Virus record (IMG/VR): IMGVR_UViG_3300009703_004110
Span: 186,001 to 250,000 of that record
Length of the DNA: 64,000 nucleotides
Direction: 5' to 3' (one strand)
The notes beneath the pieces are model-generated. The model did not search any database and was not told the origin of the DNA. It saw only the letters and a list, made by a program, of their open reading frames with translations. Of this stretch, positions 32,122 to 45,562 are shown piece after piece (the stretch's first letter is position 1; each line of letters starts with the position of its first letter). Both the position numbers and the translations under genes were made by a program.

Positions 32122-33795
32122 TTACTTTAGTTTACTAAAAAACTCTACCCTCTCGCGTTTTGATTTGAGATCGTGGATCTCTAACAATTTTACGCGCTCT
32201 TCAGGGTTTAAATCAAAAATGTTGATCTTATCAGCTAGTATCTGGCGTAATGCATTTACCTCTTGCCTACTGAATCTAACAGAACTGAGCTGATAATCTA
32301 TAAATGCCTCCATAGAGACAGGGAACAACTCACTTAGTATCTCATAAATAGCATTTGCGTACACTTGAATTTCTTTTTGTGCGTGTGAATCCATCCTTGC
32401 TTTCAAGAATAGCATCCAATCTCCAAGATTTGCCGTAACAAACGCTTCAGTATATTGTCCCATTGGAAGCACGGAACGGGCCTGCTCTCTGCAGACCCCT
32501 GCTTTTAATAGTCTCTGATAAGAAGCTTCTGAGTCCCTATGTGCATATTCTTGTATTTTATCTGCATATTCATGTAGGGGCGTATCATGATGCATAAAAG
32601 CAGGATATGTCTTAAGTCCTATATCTTTTAAGGTCCCATCTAACTGCTTATCACCAGCTTGTTTGTTGGTCGAACTTGGTTGGCGCCACTCATTCGCACC
32701 AATCCATTTTTCTTTTGGCATTACACTATAACGTGCGCTCATAACATTCCATGCGAATCGATCGTGCAATTTGTTACCCATAAAGCATTTAACCTTATGT
32801 TCTGTACTTTAAATTAGGTTATATGTACAGTTCAGACTATATCATCAGTTTTTTTAACTGCTGCGCGCTCGTGGTCCTTCATAATGTTAATAACATCGTT
32901 TGAACTAGTCGTTGAACCTTCCGAAAGATCACTCTTAAGGCTTGGCTGCTGATTGTCCACCTCAGGATGTCCCAGCAATTCACGCAGTTTTTGGTGCGCC
33001 ACGTAATAAGTATGTGTTTTTCTATCATACTTTACGAATCCAGCTTTGAATAATTCTAAACCTATAATTTCTAAAGAGTGATGCGCCTTTTGGTGCACAC
33101 TTTTGTTTTTACATAGATCTAAATTTTCTAGCTGATTATTTAATTTATCCTCATCAATATGGTGTACAATTTCTGTAGACTTAAGATTCCTGCCTAAGTG
33201 TTGCTCTATAACAAGACGATGTTCTCGTTTGTACTTGCCTTTCGCAACCCTTATATTTTTATAGCCATCTTCGGTCCATTGAATTCCGCCCTTCCAGTTT
33301 ACAAGACTTGTTGCACAAGGCTGACAATATGTTTTGCCACTATCACCATTTCTTCTTTGTCCCTTGTTATAGCTTTGAAATGTTGTTTCGCCATGCTTTG
33401 TACACTTATCGCACTTATATTTAATTCTTTTTCCGGAATTCGGTTTTAAGCTAGAAATTAATACCCCGCAAATTGTTTTATTGTCTAATAGCATGTTTTT
33501 TCTCTCCACGCTATTATATTACATAATTAGTAAAAATTGATTAACGCACCCACTGATTATGTATAAAAATAGGAAGTCTGACATGCACCTTGATCTGACA
33601 CATAGCAAAGGGACTATAATGTGCATGTCTCATTAGATATCTGACTAGGTTAGCATCATCTTGCACTGTCTTTGTGCCTTTGGCATAAGACACTCTAGCT
33701 GCTTGCGCAATATCACTATCTTTTCCAAAGTAATCTATAAGACGCACAAACCCATCGTCTAATACTTTAAATTCTTTTCCAATTAATTCATTCAT
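32122..33795 (-). CDS. thyX: FAD-dependent thymidylate synthase ThyX, two exons (33795-33544 and 32766-32122; 298 aa spliced)
   Basis: exon 1 AQAARVSY...HYSPF...PIFIHNQWVR; exon 2 HDRFAWNVMSARY...CREQARSVLP...FLKARMDSHAQKEI; joined in frame. Confidence 0.92.
32767..33543 (-). mobile_element. group I self-splicing intron (IA2-like), 777 nt
   Basis: 5' exon ends in U (CGU|UAA); ends ...AACAAAUUG; IGS GCGCACC (32999-32993) pairs with exon GGUGCGU; P10 CGUG/CACG; P4 UGCUG/CAGCA; P7 GACUA/UAGUC; S element GAUAUAGUCU. Confidence 0.92.
32832..33494 (-). CDS. intron-encoded HNH homing endonuclease
   Basis: EHRLVIEQHLGR...VHHIDEDKLNNQLENL; GGAGAG SD before MLLDNK; C-terminal codons run through the ribozyme core. 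Confidence 0.88.
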   Translation of the reverse strand: MLLDNKTICGVLISSLKPNSGKRIKYKCDKCTKHGETTFQSYNKGQRRNGDSGKTYCQPCATSLVNWKGGIQWTEDGYKNIRVAKGKYKREHRLVIEQHLGRNLKSTEIVHHIDEDKLNNQLENLDLCKNKSVHQKAHHSLEIIGLELFKAGFVKYDRKTHTYYVAHQKLRELLGHPEVDNQQPSLKSDLSEGSTTSSNDVINIMKDHERAAVKKTDDIV

Positions 33796-41065: not shown

Positions 41066-42130
41066 CTATCTTTGTATTGTGCCATAAGCATGTGATTCAG
41101 AGAGTCCTGAACCGGTTATTTTAATAAATGTGGCATTTTGCCTTAGTTCTTCTAAATTATCAGCATTTGCATAAGTAAAGCCAACTTTTAAGCCTCCTAT
41201 GAACTCTCCAACAACCCTTTCCAAGCTTCCCTTGTATGGGGTTAGTGTAGAGACACCCTCAGCCACTGTTCCTTTTTTCATTCCGCCTTTCTTTTCCATT
41301 TGAACTTCTGCGCTCGCCATTCCTCTATATTTCTTCCAAGCTTTACCGTCGTTTGTATAGATTTTTTCACCAGGAGCTTCTTTGGTTCCGGCCAATATTC
41401 CTCCGCACATTATAGCAGAAGCACCGGCCCCAATGCTCTTGGATAAGTCCATCGGATATTTAATACCGCCATCTGCAATTAAAGCAACGCCTGTCTTTGC
41501 AGAAATATCTGCACAGTCAAGAATGGAAGCAAAAGTTGGCATTCCAAAGCCGGTTTGAATTCTAGTTTTACAAATAGAACCGCCGCCTATACCAACTCTA
41601 ATGGCACTTGCACTAAGCTCGGTTAGAAACTCAAAGCCCTCAGCAGTAGCTACATTTCCAACCATTAATGGGATATCACCATGAGTCATATCCTGTATAT
41701 ATTGTACCGCATCACGCATCAAAACGTGGTATCCGTTTGCTATATCAATAGAAAACATATCTATACTATTACCGTACTCTCGATACAAATATCTGGCTCG
41801 TTCTAGCTCACTTTTAGTGACCCCTATCGCCGGCACTACAAAGGTACCCTCGTTTGGCGGCAAAAGCATGACACGCATAATCTCAGCCTGTCTCTGTGGA
41901 GTCATAAATCTGTGCAACACTCCCAGTCCACCCAGCTTAGATATAGCGACTGCCATTTCAAGCTCTGTAACTGTATCCATTGGAGATGAAATAATTGGTA
42001 TTTCCAGTTTAAGTGGACCAATCATAGTTGAAGTATCTCCACCTAATCTTGATAGCTTTTCAGAATATACATTTGGAAGAAGCAAAACATCATCGAATGC
42101 TAAGCACTCTTTAATCTCTTTAATTCTCAT
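41066..42130 (-). CDS. IMPDH/GMP reductase family (no CBS domains); GMP reductase-like flap
   Basis: FDDVLLLP, SSPMDTVTE, IDIANG, GNVAT, VGIGGGSICKTR, ADGGI, YRGMAS, AEG. Confidence 0.9.
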   Translation of the reverse strand: MRIKEIKECLAFDDVLLLPNVYSEKLSRLGGDTSTMIGPLKLEIPIISSPMDTVTELEMAVAISKLGGLGVLHRFMTPQRQAEIMRVMLLPPNEGTFVVPAIGVTKSELERARYLYREYGNSIDMFSIDIANGYHVLMRDAVQYIQDMTHGDIPLMVGNVATAEGFEFLTELSASAIRVGIGGGSICKTRIQTGFGMPTFASILDCADISAKTGVALIADGGIKYPMDLSKSIGAGASAIMCGGILAGTKEAPGEKIYTNDGKAWKKYRGMASAEVQMEKKGGMKKGTVAEGVSTLTPYKGSLERVVGEFIGGLKVGFTYANADNLEELRQNATFIKITGSGLSESHAYGTIQR

Positions 42131-42705
42131 TTAACCCTCCTGCCAAATCTTTCCATAGAATAAAAACCTTGGAAATCTATAGCCAAACTCTCAGTGCCGC
42201 CAATCCAGTATTGATCCCAGCACATCGTATCATAAAAGTAATGTGACATTTCATGACCAAGCAAAACCCTATCTATAATCAAAGAGTCTCTATCAGTCAG
42301 CAATATCGATGACGTGTCCGGGTCTTCCGTATAAGGATCATACATAGCCCATCTATCATCTACATTATTTTCGGTTACCGGATATCTATTTTTATCATTT
42401 ATGACACTTGGGCTTACAATATAGATATCCAAATTAACTTCTTTACATATGTCAGTTGGAAAGCCTTTATTCTGAGCATATCGTTTTATCGAATCATTTA
42501 TAATCTTAACTTCTCGCTGTACAAACTCTGGACTAAACGTTGTGTTTCTTGGGGTATACAACATTATATCAATATCTGCTTGTACTACATCAACGTTAGT
42601 GAATTTAATATCACCAAGCGGACTATAGTGTGAAGGCGATACCGCGCCAAGTAAAAGCAAAGCAGCTAAAAGTAAGATTACAAGGTTACCTGTCCCTTTT
42701 CTCAT
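42127..42705 (-). CDS. secreted protein with HExxH (zincin-like) motif
   Basis: signal peptide; LLGHEMSHY. Confidence 0.55.
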   Translation of the reverse strand: MRKGTGNLVILLLAALLLLGAVSPSHYSPLGDIKFTNVDVVQADIDIMLYTPRNTTFSPEFVQREVKIINDSIKRYAQNKGFPTDICKEVNLDIYIVSPSVINDKNRYPVTENNVDDRWAMYDPYTEDPDTSSILLTDRDSLIIDRVLLGHEMSHYFYDTMCWDQYWIGGTESLAIDFQGFYSMERFGRRVK

Positions 42706-42865
42706 ATGTTATATCTTTACTCTCAACCTCTAAGATATCTACCTTTAAAGTCGGCATAGCGCGGAGCCACTCTAGATCCCATCGAGATAGCCCATAATGA
42801 ATATCAACACGCCCGCTATCTCTATTTGTAACCTTTACTTTGTAGTACCTCTTCTTTCTAGTCAT
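42686..42865 (-). CDS. small basic hypothetical protein (59 aa; not in ORF track)
   Basis: MTRKKRYYKVKVTNRDSG...YEKRDR*; AGGAG SD, fills the gap. Confidence 0.6.
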   Translation of the reverse strand: MTRKKRYYKVKVTNRDSGRVDIHYGLSRWDLEWLRAMPTLKVDILEVESKDITYEKRDR

Positions 42866-43589
42866 TATTCTCTCCTAAATTATTTAGGCGTTGCTCAATT
42901 ATTGACCGTATATTTTCACTCTTTTGGAAGTTTCGATTGCCAAGGATATACGGTAGCTCCTCTACATCGATTTTTTTAACAAGATGTCTAACCACCTTAA
43001 ATGATAGGTCATCTTTCATTTCCTTAAGTTTTGGGTATCCTATGGGGGCCATCATGACGCCTACTTCTCGTATTTCGCATCGTGGATCTGAAAGCATTTT
43101 GTCCAATGCTTTTCGCCCTAATTTAATCATTGCAGCCTTACGAACTTTGGCCGTCTTATCATCTGATAGTTTTAATAAAGTTTCAGTATTGCAACCTTTC
43201 ATAGCTAAAAGCTTATGAGTCATAATCGGACTTTCGGCTAGTCTGTCAAATAAGTCAAAACTGTAATACTCCGCCACATAAGCTCTAGACGCTAAGAAGC
43301 TAAAATTTAGAGTTGCCTCTTCCCAGTGCTTTACTTTACCTACATTGCATTTGGCTATTTGACTATAAAACAAATTAACAGTCCAGTCATCATAATTGGA
43401 AATAGCTGCCGCGATTTCTTCAATATTCTCAATAGCTTCAGTGTCAAGCTCAACCAAAATACGCATCTCTTCTCTTGATAAAAAGTCTGTTACAGTCTTA
43501 GTCGGAGTTTTCCAACGTGAAGAAATTGAGTTAATACACTTTTGATAAAATGTATTATTATCATTAAATGTTGATATATCATCCATCAT
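42858..43589 (-). CDS. hypothetical helical (HEAT-like) protein
   Basis: DKTAKVRKAA / DPRCEIREVG repeats; start re-called at MMDD after AAGGA. Confidence 0.6.
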   Translation of the reverse strand: MMDDISTFNDNNTFYQKCINSISSRWKTPTKTVTDFLSREEMRILVELDTEAIENIEEIAAAISNYDDWTVNLFYSQIAKCNVGKVKHWEEATLNFSFLASRAYVAEYYSFDLFDRLAESPIMTHKLLAMKGCNTETLLKLSDDKTAKVRKAAMIKLGRKALDKMLSDPRCEIREVGVMMAPIGYPKLKEMKDDLSFKVVRHLVKKIDVEELPYILGNRNFQKSENIRSIIEQRLNNLGENND

Positions 43590-43646
43590 AAGATCCTTGT
43601 AAATTTTTTGTACCCAAACTTTCAAGAGCGAAAGCTCAACCGGAGT

Positions 43647-44480
43647 TTAGCTTAGCTCTTCTAGTGATTTAACTCCAAAGCCGGAAGCATTTCGATGACC
43701 GCCGCCACCAGGGAATTTTTCAGCAATATCCGCAACATCGACACCATCATCTGTTGACCTTAATGAAAAAGCATAAAATTCGCCATCAAAGTGGTAGCCT
43801 GCTGCGAATGGGACGCCCTCTTTGCCGGCCAAGATACCTACACCTTCGCTTCTAAAGAATGGCGTATTAATTGCCGGAACTTCATAGCCCTTAATGTTAA
43901 GAGTATGAGAATGTTCAAGCATATTTTTAACAACGCTATCTCTATACTGCTTAATTGCCGCACCCTTTCCAAGCACTCTTTCAAAGCTTTCTTCTTTTTC
44001 AAATTCATGCTCAAGAACATGCCACTTATCAAAGTCATATCCTACAGAATCAGAATATAATAACACTTCGTCTGCGTTATCTAATTCCCAATTCCATAAG
44101 TCTCTGTCCTGAATAAATCTTAATAGTCTTGGTGGCGGACGACTAAATAAATAGTCCCACGAAATTACCGCACCAGATCTCTTCATATCAAAGTGACAGA
44201 AATCTAAATCGCCAATGCTTTCCATAGCTGTTTTGTGATGGTCTAAAACGGTTAATTCTGCGGCAACATCATTTAGTGCCAATAACTGTTCTCGCGGAAG
44301 AGATATATCTGCCATAAAGACTCTCTTTCCCGCATATTCATTTACGTCCAACTCTTCTCTCAAATGATGTAGAAGAGGATGGTAATCTATACTATCACCA
44401 TACTTACGCCAGAAAGCATAAGCAGAGCCGAATCCATCAGGACAGCGCCCATGATAGAATAGAATTGTATCTTTATTCAT
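43647..44480 (-). CDS. DHH/DHHA1 phosphoesterase
   Basis: YHGRCPDG, LDHHKT, DRDLW, GGGHRNASGF. Confidence 0.9.
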   Translation of the reverse strand: MNKDTILFYHGRCPDGFGSAYAFWRKYGDSIDYHPLLHHLREELDVNEYAGKRVFMADISLPREQLLALNDVAAELTVLDHHKTAMESIGDLDFCHFDMKRSGAVISWDYLFSRPPPRLLRFIQDRDLWNWELDNADEVLLYSDSVGYDFDKWHVLEHEFEKEESFERVLGKGAAIKQYRDSVVKNMLEHSHTLNIKGYEVPAINTPFFRSEGVGILAGKEGVPFAAGYHFDGEFYAFSLRSTDDGVDVADIAEKFPGGGGHRNASGFGVKSLEELS

Positions 44481-44487
44481 TTCTTAC

Positions 44488-45515
44488 CTATATTGTTTCA
44501 GGAGAATATGAGAATTTAACTTCTTCAATAAGCGGGCACCTACTTCTAACGATTCTATTGATCTCGAATTTCATGGTATATAGATTACTGAACCCTCTGA
44601 GTTTTCCATCTAAATATGCCGCATATTCTCCAACCGACTCTAACACGTCGCACTTACTTATAACAAGGTGCGTGGTTCCGGTAATGTTAATTGATTTGAT
44701 TAATCTGTCAAGATCCAAATATCGGACCTTTCTTCTGCGCCCTGTTGTTACTCCGAACTCTTGTCCTTCGTCTGCTATCCTAAGCAGTACAGGATCGTCT
44801 AATAGCGAGGGAGGAAATAGCGGGTCTTCACCACTTCTGGTATCATAAATTTTAGCAGCACCCCAAATCTCTCGTATTTTCTGTGGTGGAATACCAAGAC
44901 TGCAAGCTCCATATGGGAGTGTAATGCTTGATGTTACAAAGGGATAATTTCCATGATCTATATCAAGCCAGACACCCTGGGCCCCCTCACATAAAATTCT
45001 ACCCTGGAGAGTATCCCTGTACAAAAGATTCTCTGATAAAACTTGCTCAGCCAAAAGCCCTGTTCTTGCGTGCTTATCAGCATACACAGGAGCTATGCCT
45101 TTACTGGTAGTACCAAGTTTACCGGCGAGATTGTTCTTGTCAAACTCTATGTGTTTTTCTTGTACAATATGACAGTTTGGAGATACCTTTACTAATGAGG
45201 TGTCAAATCCATTCTCTTCTAAATAATCAAGCTCTGCTTGAAAAGACGGAGGATGCAAAACACACCCAGGACCAACTAAAGATAATTTTCCGTGGAAAAC
45301 TCCAGAAGGAACTAAATGTGTTTTGTATTTCTTACCGTCTACAAAAACAGTATGACCAGCGTTATTTCCACCGGCCCATCTTGCCACTATGTCATATTCT
45401 CTATGATCAGCCAAGTGACTGGTGATCTTACCTTTTGCTTCGTCGCTTTGTTGTTGTTAACCCCGAAGGGTCAACCCCAACATAAACCAATTACTACATC
45501 TGCGTAATCAATCAT
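44488..45515 (-). CDS. purA: adenylosuccinate synthetase (short form, 332 aa if the gap is skipped), interrupted by a 29-nt insert
   Basis: segment 1 (45515-45474) MIDYADVVIGLCWG after AGGAGG; segment 2 (45444-44488) DEAKGK...GGNNAGHT...GTTSKGIAP...EGAQG...YPFVTSS...TTGRRR. Confidence 0.88.
45445..45473 (-). other. 29-nt coding gap with stop codon and UUCG hairpin (candidate translational-bypass element)
   Basis: GGT|TGACCCTTCGGGGTTAACAACAACAAAGC|GAC; stem GUUGACCC-UUCG-GGGUUAAC. Confidence 0.7.
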
Positions 45516-45562
45516 GCCGGATAATCCTCCTATTTATTATGGTCAACAAGAAATATAACAAG

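Follow-up and report, generated by a model that had tools for sequence, protein, structure and literature searches.

A candidate ribosome-hop insert in the nucleotide-binding loop of a marine jumbo-phage purA gene

Introduction

Efficient programmed bypassing in bacterial-type translation has rested on essentially one case, gene 60 of phage T4 and its homologues in topoisomerase genes, plus one candidate in a Streptomyces phage. [quoted passage not shown] The gap spans 45-50 nt and carries an SD-like GAG a few nt 5' of a landing codon read by the same tRNA as the take-off codon, and a nascent-peptide signal with a conserved basic motif (NVRRS-type) is encoded in about 46 codons before take-off, the mechanism relying on tunnel contacts 18-30 residues from the peptidyl-transferase centre. 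The insert occupies highly conserved coding DNA, and the associated HNH endonuclease gene is often decayed or lost (10.1101/2022.08.31.505936).

Interruptions have also been described in other settings. In the terminase gene of Streptomyces phage phiHau3, blocks of about 10 nt are proposed to be hopped over, with a rare UUA codon in the A site as the pause and a proposed role in sensing host tRNA; local structure brings the landing codon close, and a junction peptide GWG|NDP.. was seen by mass spectrometry in E. coli (PMC10732093). [quoted passage not shown] Lastly, low-level and unprogrammed hopping of peptidyl-tRNA from a slow A-site codon, such as a stop or hungry codon, to a similar triplet a few nucleotides downstream has been documented in E. 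coli (Weiss et al., 1987 and later work, as cited in PMC10732093). Here we analyze a 29-nt insert in a purA gene that resembles the gene 60 element in architecture and differs from it in host gene, gap length, nascent chain and landing codon. No report of a purA case was found in the searchable literature.

Results

Anatomy of the interrupted purA gene

The insert was identified in a 64,000-nt stretch (hereafter, the window) of IMG/VR record IMGVR_UViG_3300009703_004110, which belongs to a 332-kb genome. The initial annotation, made from sequence alone, had described a purA P-loop split by a 29-nt hairpin-forming gap, and this description is confirmed. The following features are found on the minus strand:

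45526..45531 (-), Shine-Dalgarno sequence AGGAGG of purA exon 1
45474..45515 (-), exon 1, starting at ATG 45515, with 14 codons (MIDYADVVIGLCWG) corresponding to residues about 1-12 of solved PurA enzymes and including the first Gly of the P-loop
45476..45521 (-), 5' stem-loop in which the start-codon region pairs with the Leu-Cys-Trp codons and the last pair uses the first G of the take-off codon
45474..45476 (-), proposed take-off codon GGT (Gly)
45471..45473 (-), stop codon TGA
45456..45475 (-), proposed take-off hairpin of 8 bp with a UUCG loop, its apical part CCC-UUCG-GGG at 45470..45461 and the stop in the 5' arm
45445..45473 (-), 29-nt coding gap, proposed to be skipped by the ribosome
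45448..45460 (-), A/C-rich spacer of 13 nt without G, between the G run of the hairpin and the landing triplet
45445..45447 (-), proposed landing triplet AGC, matching the GCC anticodon of tRNA-Gly at 2 of 3 positions and holding the first G after the hairpin
44488..45444 (-), exon 2, with the resume codon GAC (Asp of GDExKGK), 317 further codons and the stop

The exon 2 frame matches the Pfam Adenylsucc_synt profile (PF00709) at 5e-76 (256.5 bits against a cut-off of 27), starting at profile position 9, and aligns from residue 13-16 of solved PurA structures. The P-loop is contiguous only if the 29 nt are skipped, whereas intact relatives read ..GL(A/C)WGDEAKGK straight through. The resume frame contains TAA at 45460..45458 and no start codon before GAC, so a single frameshift or an internal start cannot join the pieces. 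The NCBIfam PurA equivalog cut-offs are not reached (246 against 402), so this is a divergent short form. An identity as PurZ was rejected, with NF038379 scoring 84 bits against a cut-off of 300 and tblastn identity to annotated PurZ phage genes of 22-28%. A megablast search of the locus against GenBank phages found nothing, and tblastn returned only distant PurA/PurZ hits of at most 39% identity.

The hairpin GUUGACCC-UUCG-GGGUUAAC is unique in the window, with 0 expected in 100 shuffles, and local folds give z = -3.4 to -5.1. The initial annotation had extended it into the upstream coding sequence by pairing UGUUG with CAACA across a GG/AA internal loop. This extension is present in the local MFE, but when all of exon 1 is included UGUUG instead joins the 5' stem-loop. 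The only Rfam match in the window is a group I intron at 32802..33067, with nothing near 45445..45521.

Related phages carry inserts at the same junction

Seventeen distinct inserts of 7, 8, 11, 12, 13, 14, 29, 30, 32 and 33 nt lie between the same GGT and GAY codons in related phage purA genes from independent metagenomes. Identical inserts appear in independent assemblies of several carrier loci, here given L numbers (L012/L013, L010/L075, L079/L085/L245, L240/L241 and L242/L243). All three length classes modulo 3 occur, and the homologous inserts of the window, L009 and L012 are 29, 30 and 32 nt long. In 17 of 17 variants the take-off codon is GGT, the first triplet of the insert is a stop, no G occurs between the stop (or the apical hairpin) and the last triplet, with the G-free runs summing to 151 nt, and the last triplet has a central G (GGY in 9, GGA in 3, AGY in 4 and TGT in 1). 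The probabilities computed for these rules treat related variants as independent. A scan that did not require a stop after the take-off codon found no further inserts, and a scan for longer inserts (37-67 nt) at this junction found no genuine case. In one genome per bacterial and archaeal species, only uninterrupted purA genes with chance upstream matches were found, and no cellular carriers were seen.

Both the gene and the insert are under purifying selection. All carrier ORFs are complete, dN is 0.17-0.27 with dS saturated, and dN/dS is 0.08-0.18 where it can be computed. Exon 1, its Shine-Dalgarno sequence and its start codon are kept in all 18 carriers, and the start-less 5' end of exon 2 differs between the window and L009 only at synonymous positions. 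The sister carriers L009 and L012 share the insert, and inserts are 85-93% identical between pairs whose four-fold sites are only 29-45% identical.

A stem-loop abuts the take-off codon

The 5' stem-loop is present in 18 of 18 carriers, which fold to -15 to -27 kcal/mol, and in 0 of 53 intact relatives, which fold to -3 to -11. The class with 14-codon first exons is 90% paired, against 29-46% when the partners are slid. In the 17-codon class the stem is supported by covariation, with one pair being GC in 7 sequences, AU in 5 and UG in 1, and never unpaired, six pairs showing double changes, and a score exceeding 500 of 500 shuffles. The association between carriers and stem-loop nonetheless rests on few independent contrasts, and a phylogenetically corrected test was underpowered (3-4 contrasts in the loci-only tree, sign test p = 0.25).

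Related elements in other genes and associated endonucleases

The same UUCG element lies after GGT at two other sites of a terminase large-subunit gene (L392, L395/L514, L575/L576), where skipping it restores colinearity. A relative, L553, whose terminase protein is 99-100% identical over the aligned part to that of carrier L514, lacks the insert. Furthermore, the take-off module of purA carriers L009/L012 is identical over 18 nt to that of a genuine gene-60-type topoisomerase cassette from metagenomic data (L388), which has the NVRRS-type motif. Only the terminase and topoisomerase cases were convincing, and a scan for the short GGGGTTAA..CCCC hairpin gave only unrelated hairpins outside purA.

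A DUF7487/TnsA-like ORF matching PHROG homing-endonuclease families lies upstream of purA in some carriers. It is intact in L240/L241 and L086, is present as remnants in L242/L243, and its N-terminal piece lies at the contig edge in L247, while it is absent from about 60 intact loci. In the window itself no endonuclease homologue or remnant lies near purA, and the 85-aa and 159-aa upstream ORFs have no Pfam or PHROG match.

Discussion

The comparative data suggest that the 29 nt are a programmed translational bypass element, a reading to which we assign a probability of roughly 0.78 in the absence of protein, RNA or read-level data. The initial annotation had proposed a compact gene-60-like bypass element, with a mini intervening sequence removed at the RNA level as the alternative, and the homologous inserts support the first of these proposals. 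In the proposed model, ribosomes start at ATG 45515, decode 14 codons while melting the 5' stem-loop, and pause with peptidyl-tRNA-Gly on GGU and UGA in the A site. The apical hairpin UGA-CCC-UUCG-GGG would then form in or at the A site, hindering release factor and loosening codon-anticodon pairing. As the mRNA leaves the ribosome, the 5' stem-loop would re-form and, because its 3' arm ends in the first G of the take-off codon, re-folding would pull the message forward. The peptidyl-tRNA would be carried over the hairpin, scan the 13-nt tract that contains no G, and re-pair at the first G-containing triplet, AGC in the window and GGN in 12 of 17 variants, so that GAC enters the A site and decoding resumes to give a PurA protein with an uninterrupted WGDEAKGK loop. 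Every step involving the ribosome is inferred, and the efficiency of the process could be very low.

The comparison with gene 60 shows both similarities and differences. On the one hand, the Gly codon followed directly by a stop, the adjacent 5' stem-loop and the take-off hairpin are found in the window, and the hairpin has the same design as the A-site hairpin seen in the T4 take-off complex (PMC5462505). On the other hand, the host gene is purA, the gap is 29 nt (7-33 nt in the family), G-free before the landing triplet and devoid of an SD-like GAG, the exon 1 stem-loop includes the start codon, the endonuclease associated in relatives is DUF7487/TnsA-like rather than HNH MobA, and no bypass product has been demonstrated. 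The element is not a member of the gene-60/MobA cassette as defined. Two caveats raised in the initial annotation also hold. The nascent chain is only 14 aa (14-17 aa in the family) and consists of ordinary PurA N-terminal residues, and the landing triplet of the window, AGC, is not a Gly codon, whereas in T4 loss of a matching landing codon sends ribosomes elsewhere (10.1101/2024.12.09.627546). The window has no tRNA genes, so a phage-encoded special tRNA-Gly is not supported, at least within these 64 kb.

The short purA variants (7-14 nt) and the terminase elements resemble the phiHau3 case, but the elements analyzed here use a stop codon and no sequence relationship between the two was found. 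Like the Magnusiomyces byps, the element type occurs at several sites and in several genes, but it does so across different phages, a single copy is present in the 64-kb window, the setting is bacterial-type translation and the link is to homing endonucleases. The 7- and 8-nt variants (GGT to TGT or GGT) look like the low-level hopping events of E. coli, yet the elements here carry conserved stimulatory structures and sit in genes kept under selection.

The element probably belongs to a mobile cassette, comprising the recoded exon 1 and the insert, spread by homing endonucleases whose target in the conserved P-loop DNA would be broken by the insert. This part of the model has moderate support in relatives and is not seen in the window itself. 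A broader and more tentative possibility is that the purA insert belongs to a portable, largely mRNA-autonomous module (GGU, a stop, a hairpin, a G-free spacer and an NGN triplet, plus a recoded upstream stem-loop) that could settle after Gly codons of different essential phage genes (purA, terminase, topoisomerase), spread by different homing endonucleases as an immunity insert. Such a module would work with only 14-17 nascent residues, making gene 60 one instance of a general, evolvable strategy in which the long nascent-peptide signal is dispensable.

Among alternative explanations, removal of the insert from the mRNA, in the manner of unconventional HAC1/XBP1-type or bulge-helix-bulge splicing, is unlikely but not excluded by sequence data alone. 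The hairpins could be nuclease recognition sites, and the same genome has a group I intron in thyX, so interrupted genes occur in it. However, the stop directly after GGT, the G-free gap and the NGN triplet matching the tRNA-Gly anticodon are translational rules with no role in splicing. Furthermore, the 7- and 8-nt variants have no hairpin in the insert to recognise, the junctions lie inside stems rather than in bulges, no Rfam family matches at the site, and the take-off module equals that of a gene-60-type cassette, a type known to be bypassed by ribosomes.

It is also unlikely that purA is a pseudogene or low-activity remnant in which the insert is a tolerated lesion, such as a repair scar at a homing-endonuclease cut site. 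Gene callers report only truncated proteins, the landing triplet of the window is non-cognate, and the short inserts look like inverted duplications of the flank, as a repair scar would. Yet the 17 carrier ORFs are complete with dN/dS of about 0.1, exon 1 and its initiation signals are conserved, and the insert is far more conserved than synonymous sites. The absence at this site of any insert lacking an immediate stop is unexpected for random scars and points to selection on how the insert is decoded.

Ordinary recoding or restart, either by stop-codon readthrough plus frameshifting, which would leave extra residues in the P-loop, or by internal initiation, which would yield an N-terminally truncated enzyme, is slightly less likely still. 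Some short variants leave the resume frame open across the insert, where gene callers used a TTG, and the 12-, 30- and 33-nt variants are in frame. In the window, however, both alternative frames hit a stop inside or just after the insert, and no ATG/GTG/TTG lies between TAA 45460 and GAC 45444. The implied peptides differ completely between variants and frames, so no product is conserved, the TTG is absent wherever the Ala codon is GCC, and a start at 45414 would delete the P-loop, yet DEAKGK and the residues after it are under purifying selection. An alternative genetic code was rejected because the frames differ between homologous inserts. Lastly, although an independent assembly of the window's own contig could not be confirmed and no reads were at hand, an assembly or sequencing artefact is very improbable, since homologous inserts at the same junction occur in many unrelated metagenome assemblies, several of them found twice independently, and a 29-nt structured insertion is not a typical error.

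If the bypass reading is correct, a second natural family in a different gene would show that the mechanism is not a one-off, and the link between homing endonucleases and immunity inserts that the ribosome ignores would extend to another endonuclease family and to other genes. The natural series of 17 or more variants, which includes versions without a hairpin, with relaxed landing triplets and with short nascent chains, could be used to test directly current models of the A-site hairpin, of re-folding of exiting mRNA as the motor, of anticodon scanning and of the role of the nascent peptide. Gene callers truncate or split these genes, and about a fifth of the closest homologues listed here were affected, so surveys of phage metabolic genes and terminases under-count them or label them as pseudogenes.

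Anatomy of the purA insert

The initial annotation had described a purA P-loop split by a 29-nt hairpin insert, with a stop codon directly after a Gly codon and the conserved continuation resuming in another frame, and this description is accurate. On the minus strand, the window presents the following arrangement:

45531..45526 (minus), Shine-Dalgarno sequence AGGAGG
45515 (minus), ATG start of fourteen codons, MIDYADVVIGLCWG
45476..45474 (minus), GGT, the last of the fourteen codons
45473..45471 (minus), TGA stop codon
45473..45445 (minus), insert of 29 nt
45475..45456 (minus), hairpin GUUGACCC-UUCG-GGGUUAAC
45444 (minus), GAC, which opens a 318-codon frame running to 44488

The downstream frame encodes a PurA-family protein, which matches Pfam Adenylsucc_synt at 5e-76, starting at profile position 9, and aligns from residue 13-16 of solved adenylosuccinate synthetases. 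The 14 upstream codons therefore supply the first strand and the first glycine of the GDExKGK loop. The hairpin is unique in the window, with none expected by chance, and local folds are far more stable than those of shuffled sequences (z from -3.4 to -5.1). The purA 5' UTR also contains, at about 45546..45555 (minus), the sequence CUUGUUGACC, which repeats the 5' arm of this hairpin and could pair with its 3' arm, although this may be a coincidence.

Recurrence at a single codon junction

The window lies on a 332-kb IMG/VR contig. Most of 78 related viral loci, and most of the 120 closest proteins, read ..GL(A/C)WGDE(A/G)KGK without interruption, but some do not, and odd gene calls among the closest proteins led to the identification of further interrupted genes. 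In total, 17 different inserts were recovered, all of them between the same GGT and the same GAY codon, with lengths of 7, 8, 11, 12, 13, 14, 29, 30, 32 and 33 nt. Several of these were found twice in independent assemblies (loci L012/L013, L010/L075, L079/L085/L245, L240/L241 and L242/L243). The insert in the window is clearly homologous to those of the carrier loci L009 (30 nt) and L012 (32 nt), and homologous inserts in three different frames, each followed by an intact gene, are what untranslated sequence would look like. Scans of viral contigs revealed no insert at this site lacking an immediate stop and none of 37-67 nt, and a scan of one genome per cellular species identified none at all.

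Selection on the gene and on the insert

Every carrier has a complete downstream frame of 317-329 codons. Between carriers, dN is 0.17-0.27 while dS is saturated and, where dN/dS can be computed, it is 0.08-0.18, no higher than between intact genes. L009 and L012 are sisters on the tree and share the insert, so the gene has stayed intact with the insert in place over that divergence. Furthermore, exon 1, its Shine-Dalgarno sequence and its start codon are kept in all carriers, and the start-less 5' end of exon 2 differs between the window and L009 only at synonymous positions. The inserts themselves are 85-93% identical in pairs whose four-fold degenerate sites are only 29-45% identical.

Sequence rules of the inserts

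The rules that the inserts obey are translational. All 17 variants begin with a stop codon, which is TAA in the 7-14-nt class and TGA in the 29-33-nt class. No G occurs between the stop and the last triplet (in the UUCG class the count starts after the apical hairpin), and these G-free runs sum to 151 nt on a strand that is 23% G. The last triplet always has G in the middle, being GGY in 9 variants, GGA in 3, AGY in 4 and TGT in 1. Probabilities computed for these patterns treat related variants as independent and are illustrative only. In the window, the corresponding elements are:

45460..45448 (minus), G-free run
45447..45445 (minus), last triplet, AGC

This is the pattern that would be produced by a peptidyl-tRNA-Gly that leaves GGU and scans for the first place to re-pair. 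The AGC triplet of the window offers two of three pairs, and it is the first triplet after the hairpin that does. In this scheme, the G-rich 3' arm of the hairpin, which contains GGG and GGU, would have to stay hidden, and T4 behaves in the same way, with a cognate GGG in the 5' part of its gap that is not scanned (10.1101/2024.12.09.627546).

A stem-loop upstream of the take-off codon

In every one of 18 distinct carriers, the 54 nt ending at the take-off codon fold into one long hairpin of -15.4 to -27.3 kcal/mol, whereas none of 53 distinct intact relatives does so (-3.3 to -10.7 kcal/mol). In the window, this structure corresponds to:

45521..45476 (minus), 5' stem-loop

Here the start-codon region pairs with the Leu-Cys-Trp codons and the last pair uses the first G of the take-off codon, and the stem-loop abuts the take-off hairpin with no spacer. 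In the 13 carriers with a 17-codon exon 1, 86% of cells are paired, against 19-52% when the partners are slid, and six pairs show double changes. One pair, joining the middle base of codon 3 (Lys, Arg or Met) to the third base of the Ala codon, is GC in 7 sequences, AU in 5 and UG in 1, and is never unpaired. The 14-codon class, which includes the window, is 90% paired, against 29-46%. Carriers, however, cluster on the tree, and on the loci-only tree there are only 3-4 independent contrasts, so the association is not significant after correction; the larger tree needs 14 changes of carrier state, at least 6 of them forced by well-supported branches. The stem-loop explains why carriers have a recoded exon 1, with a Cys codon or an MS(K/R) extension, and a stronger Shine-Dalgarno sequence.

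In the purA 5' UTR of loci L010, L020, L086, L242, L250 and L248, about 30-90 nt upstream of the start codon, a conserved inverted repeat (CCTACTAAT..ATTAGTAG) has a loop complementary to a downstream CCAAGGCA or CCAAGAC. The two versions co-vary between loci, suggesting that this may be a pseudoknot. The motif ACCCCAAG resembles the 3' arm of the insert, and no Rfam family matches.

The same element in terminase genes, and a gene-60-type topoisomerase cassette

A scan for the take-off module identified it at two different sites in terminase large-subunit genes (Walker A and B motifs; Pfam Terminase_6N and C-terminal nuclease domains) of small marine phage contigs, at the following positions:

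L392:4528-4562 (minus), terminase element
L395:4483-4515 (minus) = L514:2468-2500, terminase element
L575:1308-1335, terminase element

Inserts in terminase large-subunit genes (locus; insert; junction, with a slash marking the insert; proposed landing triplet)
L392; 31 nt; ..VGEG / LDYMVIDEAA; GGT
L575/L576; 25 nt; same site as L392; GGT
L395/L514; 30 nt; ..TTPEG / YNW..; GGA

In each locus the element follows GGT and starts with TGA, each terminase is uninterrupted at the other's site, and skipping the insert restores colinearity. About 75 related terminase loci lack inserts, among them L553, whose terminase protein is 99-100% identical over the aligned part to that of the carrier L514. The intact allele has GGA at the site, and the carrier has GGT plus 27 nt in front of it. 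The carrier also has 8-9 synonymous changes packed into the nine codons just upstream, while the remaining 480 nt upstream are essentially identical. One further terminase relative (L559:2797-2800) changes frame in mid-gene without any insert, which is probably an assembly indel.

The same scan detected a textbook gene-60-type topoisomerase cassette on a 213-kb viral contig (L388:6565-7164, plus). This cassette comprises a GyrB/Toprim ORF1, a middle ORF with a zinc-finger-like start, a 53-codon ORF2 leader with an NVRRS-type motif, a 45-nt gap from GGT-TGA to GGC, and a TOPRIM_C domain after the gap; a 367-aa ORF with no Pfam match lies between the split topoisomerase parts. Its take-off module is identical over 18 nt to that of purA in L009/L012, which may reflect either common descent or convergence on one design.

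Association with homing endonucleases

In L240/L241 (11-nt insert) and L086 (13-nt insert), a 279-289-aa ORF lies directly upstream of purA on the opposite strand (L240:1516-2385, minus; L086:924-1757, minus). It matches Pfam DUF7487 and the TnsA-like endonuclease N-terminal domain, as well as PHROG families annotated as homing endonuclease. L242/L243 keep only its two ends (remnants at L242:2094-2299), in the carrier L247 an N-terminal piece lies at the contig edge, and L250 has a weak trace. None of about 60 intact loci has this ORF, and neither does the window, for which a link to homing is therefore an inference from relatives. This arrangement mirrors the MobA/gene-60 element, in which the bypass insert protects the carrier from its own endonuclease, the adjoining coding region is a recoded copy, and the endonuclease gene is often decayed or lost (10.1101/2022.08.31.505936). 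In two other carriers (L249:1248-2297 and L253:1265-2368), a Gad2-family ORF (Pfam PF26128) occupies the slot just upstream of purA that holds the endonuclease gene in other carriers, and the slot hence appears to be an insertion hot spot.

A bypassing model for the purA insert

The interpretation of the insert as a compact bypass element akin to that of T4 gene 60, put forward in the initial annotation, is supported by the comparative evidence, and programmed translational bypassing is considered the best explanation, with a probability of about 0.78. The events on the ribosome are inferred by analogy with T4. In the T4 take-off complex, a 12-nt hairpin of three C-G pairs with a UUCG loop, containing the stop, sits in the A site, and re-folding of the 5' stem-loop as it leaves the 30S subunit is thought to pull the message forward (PMC5462505). 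The window has the same two structures in the same order, followed by an unstructured G-free tract and then by the first triplet that can pair with the Gly anticodon. The 7- and 8-nt variants have the 5' stem-loop, the stop and the landing triplet but no hairpin in the insert, suggesting that the hairpin matters mainly for the longer jumps.

Several defining features of the gene 60 cassette are nonetheless missing. The nascent chain is 14 aa long and consists of ordinary PurA residues, while T4 depends on tunnel contacts well beyond that length. Furthermore, there is no SD-like GAG in the gap, the gap is shorter, and the landing triplet of the window is not a Gly codon. Efficiency may therefore be low, or the mechanism may differ in detail. 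No report of a purA case was found in the searchable literature, and the most thorough published survey found gene-60-type bypassing only in topoisomerase genes.

RNA-level excision of the insert cannot be excluded without RNA data, although the translational rules followed by the inserts would then have no explanation. The evidence of selection on both the gene and the insert argues against a pseudogene and against neutral junk. One frameshift or an internal start cannot join the pieces, since the resume frame carries TAA inside the insert and has no start codon before GAC, and the third frame also ends shortly afterwards. Lastly, the recovery of several inserts from independent assemblies rules out an assembly artefact for the phenomenon.

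Genomic context

In the window, purA sits in a purine-nucleotide module (genes after purA at 41066..44480, minus). It is followed by a DHH/DHHA1 phosphoesterase (43647..44480), and two further ORFs with no PHROG match lie between that gene and a 354-aa IMP dehydrogenase or GMP reductase-like gene (41066..42130), an order that relatives keep. Elsewhere in the window, Rfam finds a full-length group I intron (32802..33067, minus; 71 bits, E 7e-16). Of the two associated ORFs (32835..33509 and 32125..32781), the one that runs into the intron has an HNH_3 endonuclease domain and the one after it is the C-terminal part of ThyX (Pfam Thy1, profile positions 79-191), so that thyX appears to be split by an intron that carries a homing endonuclease.
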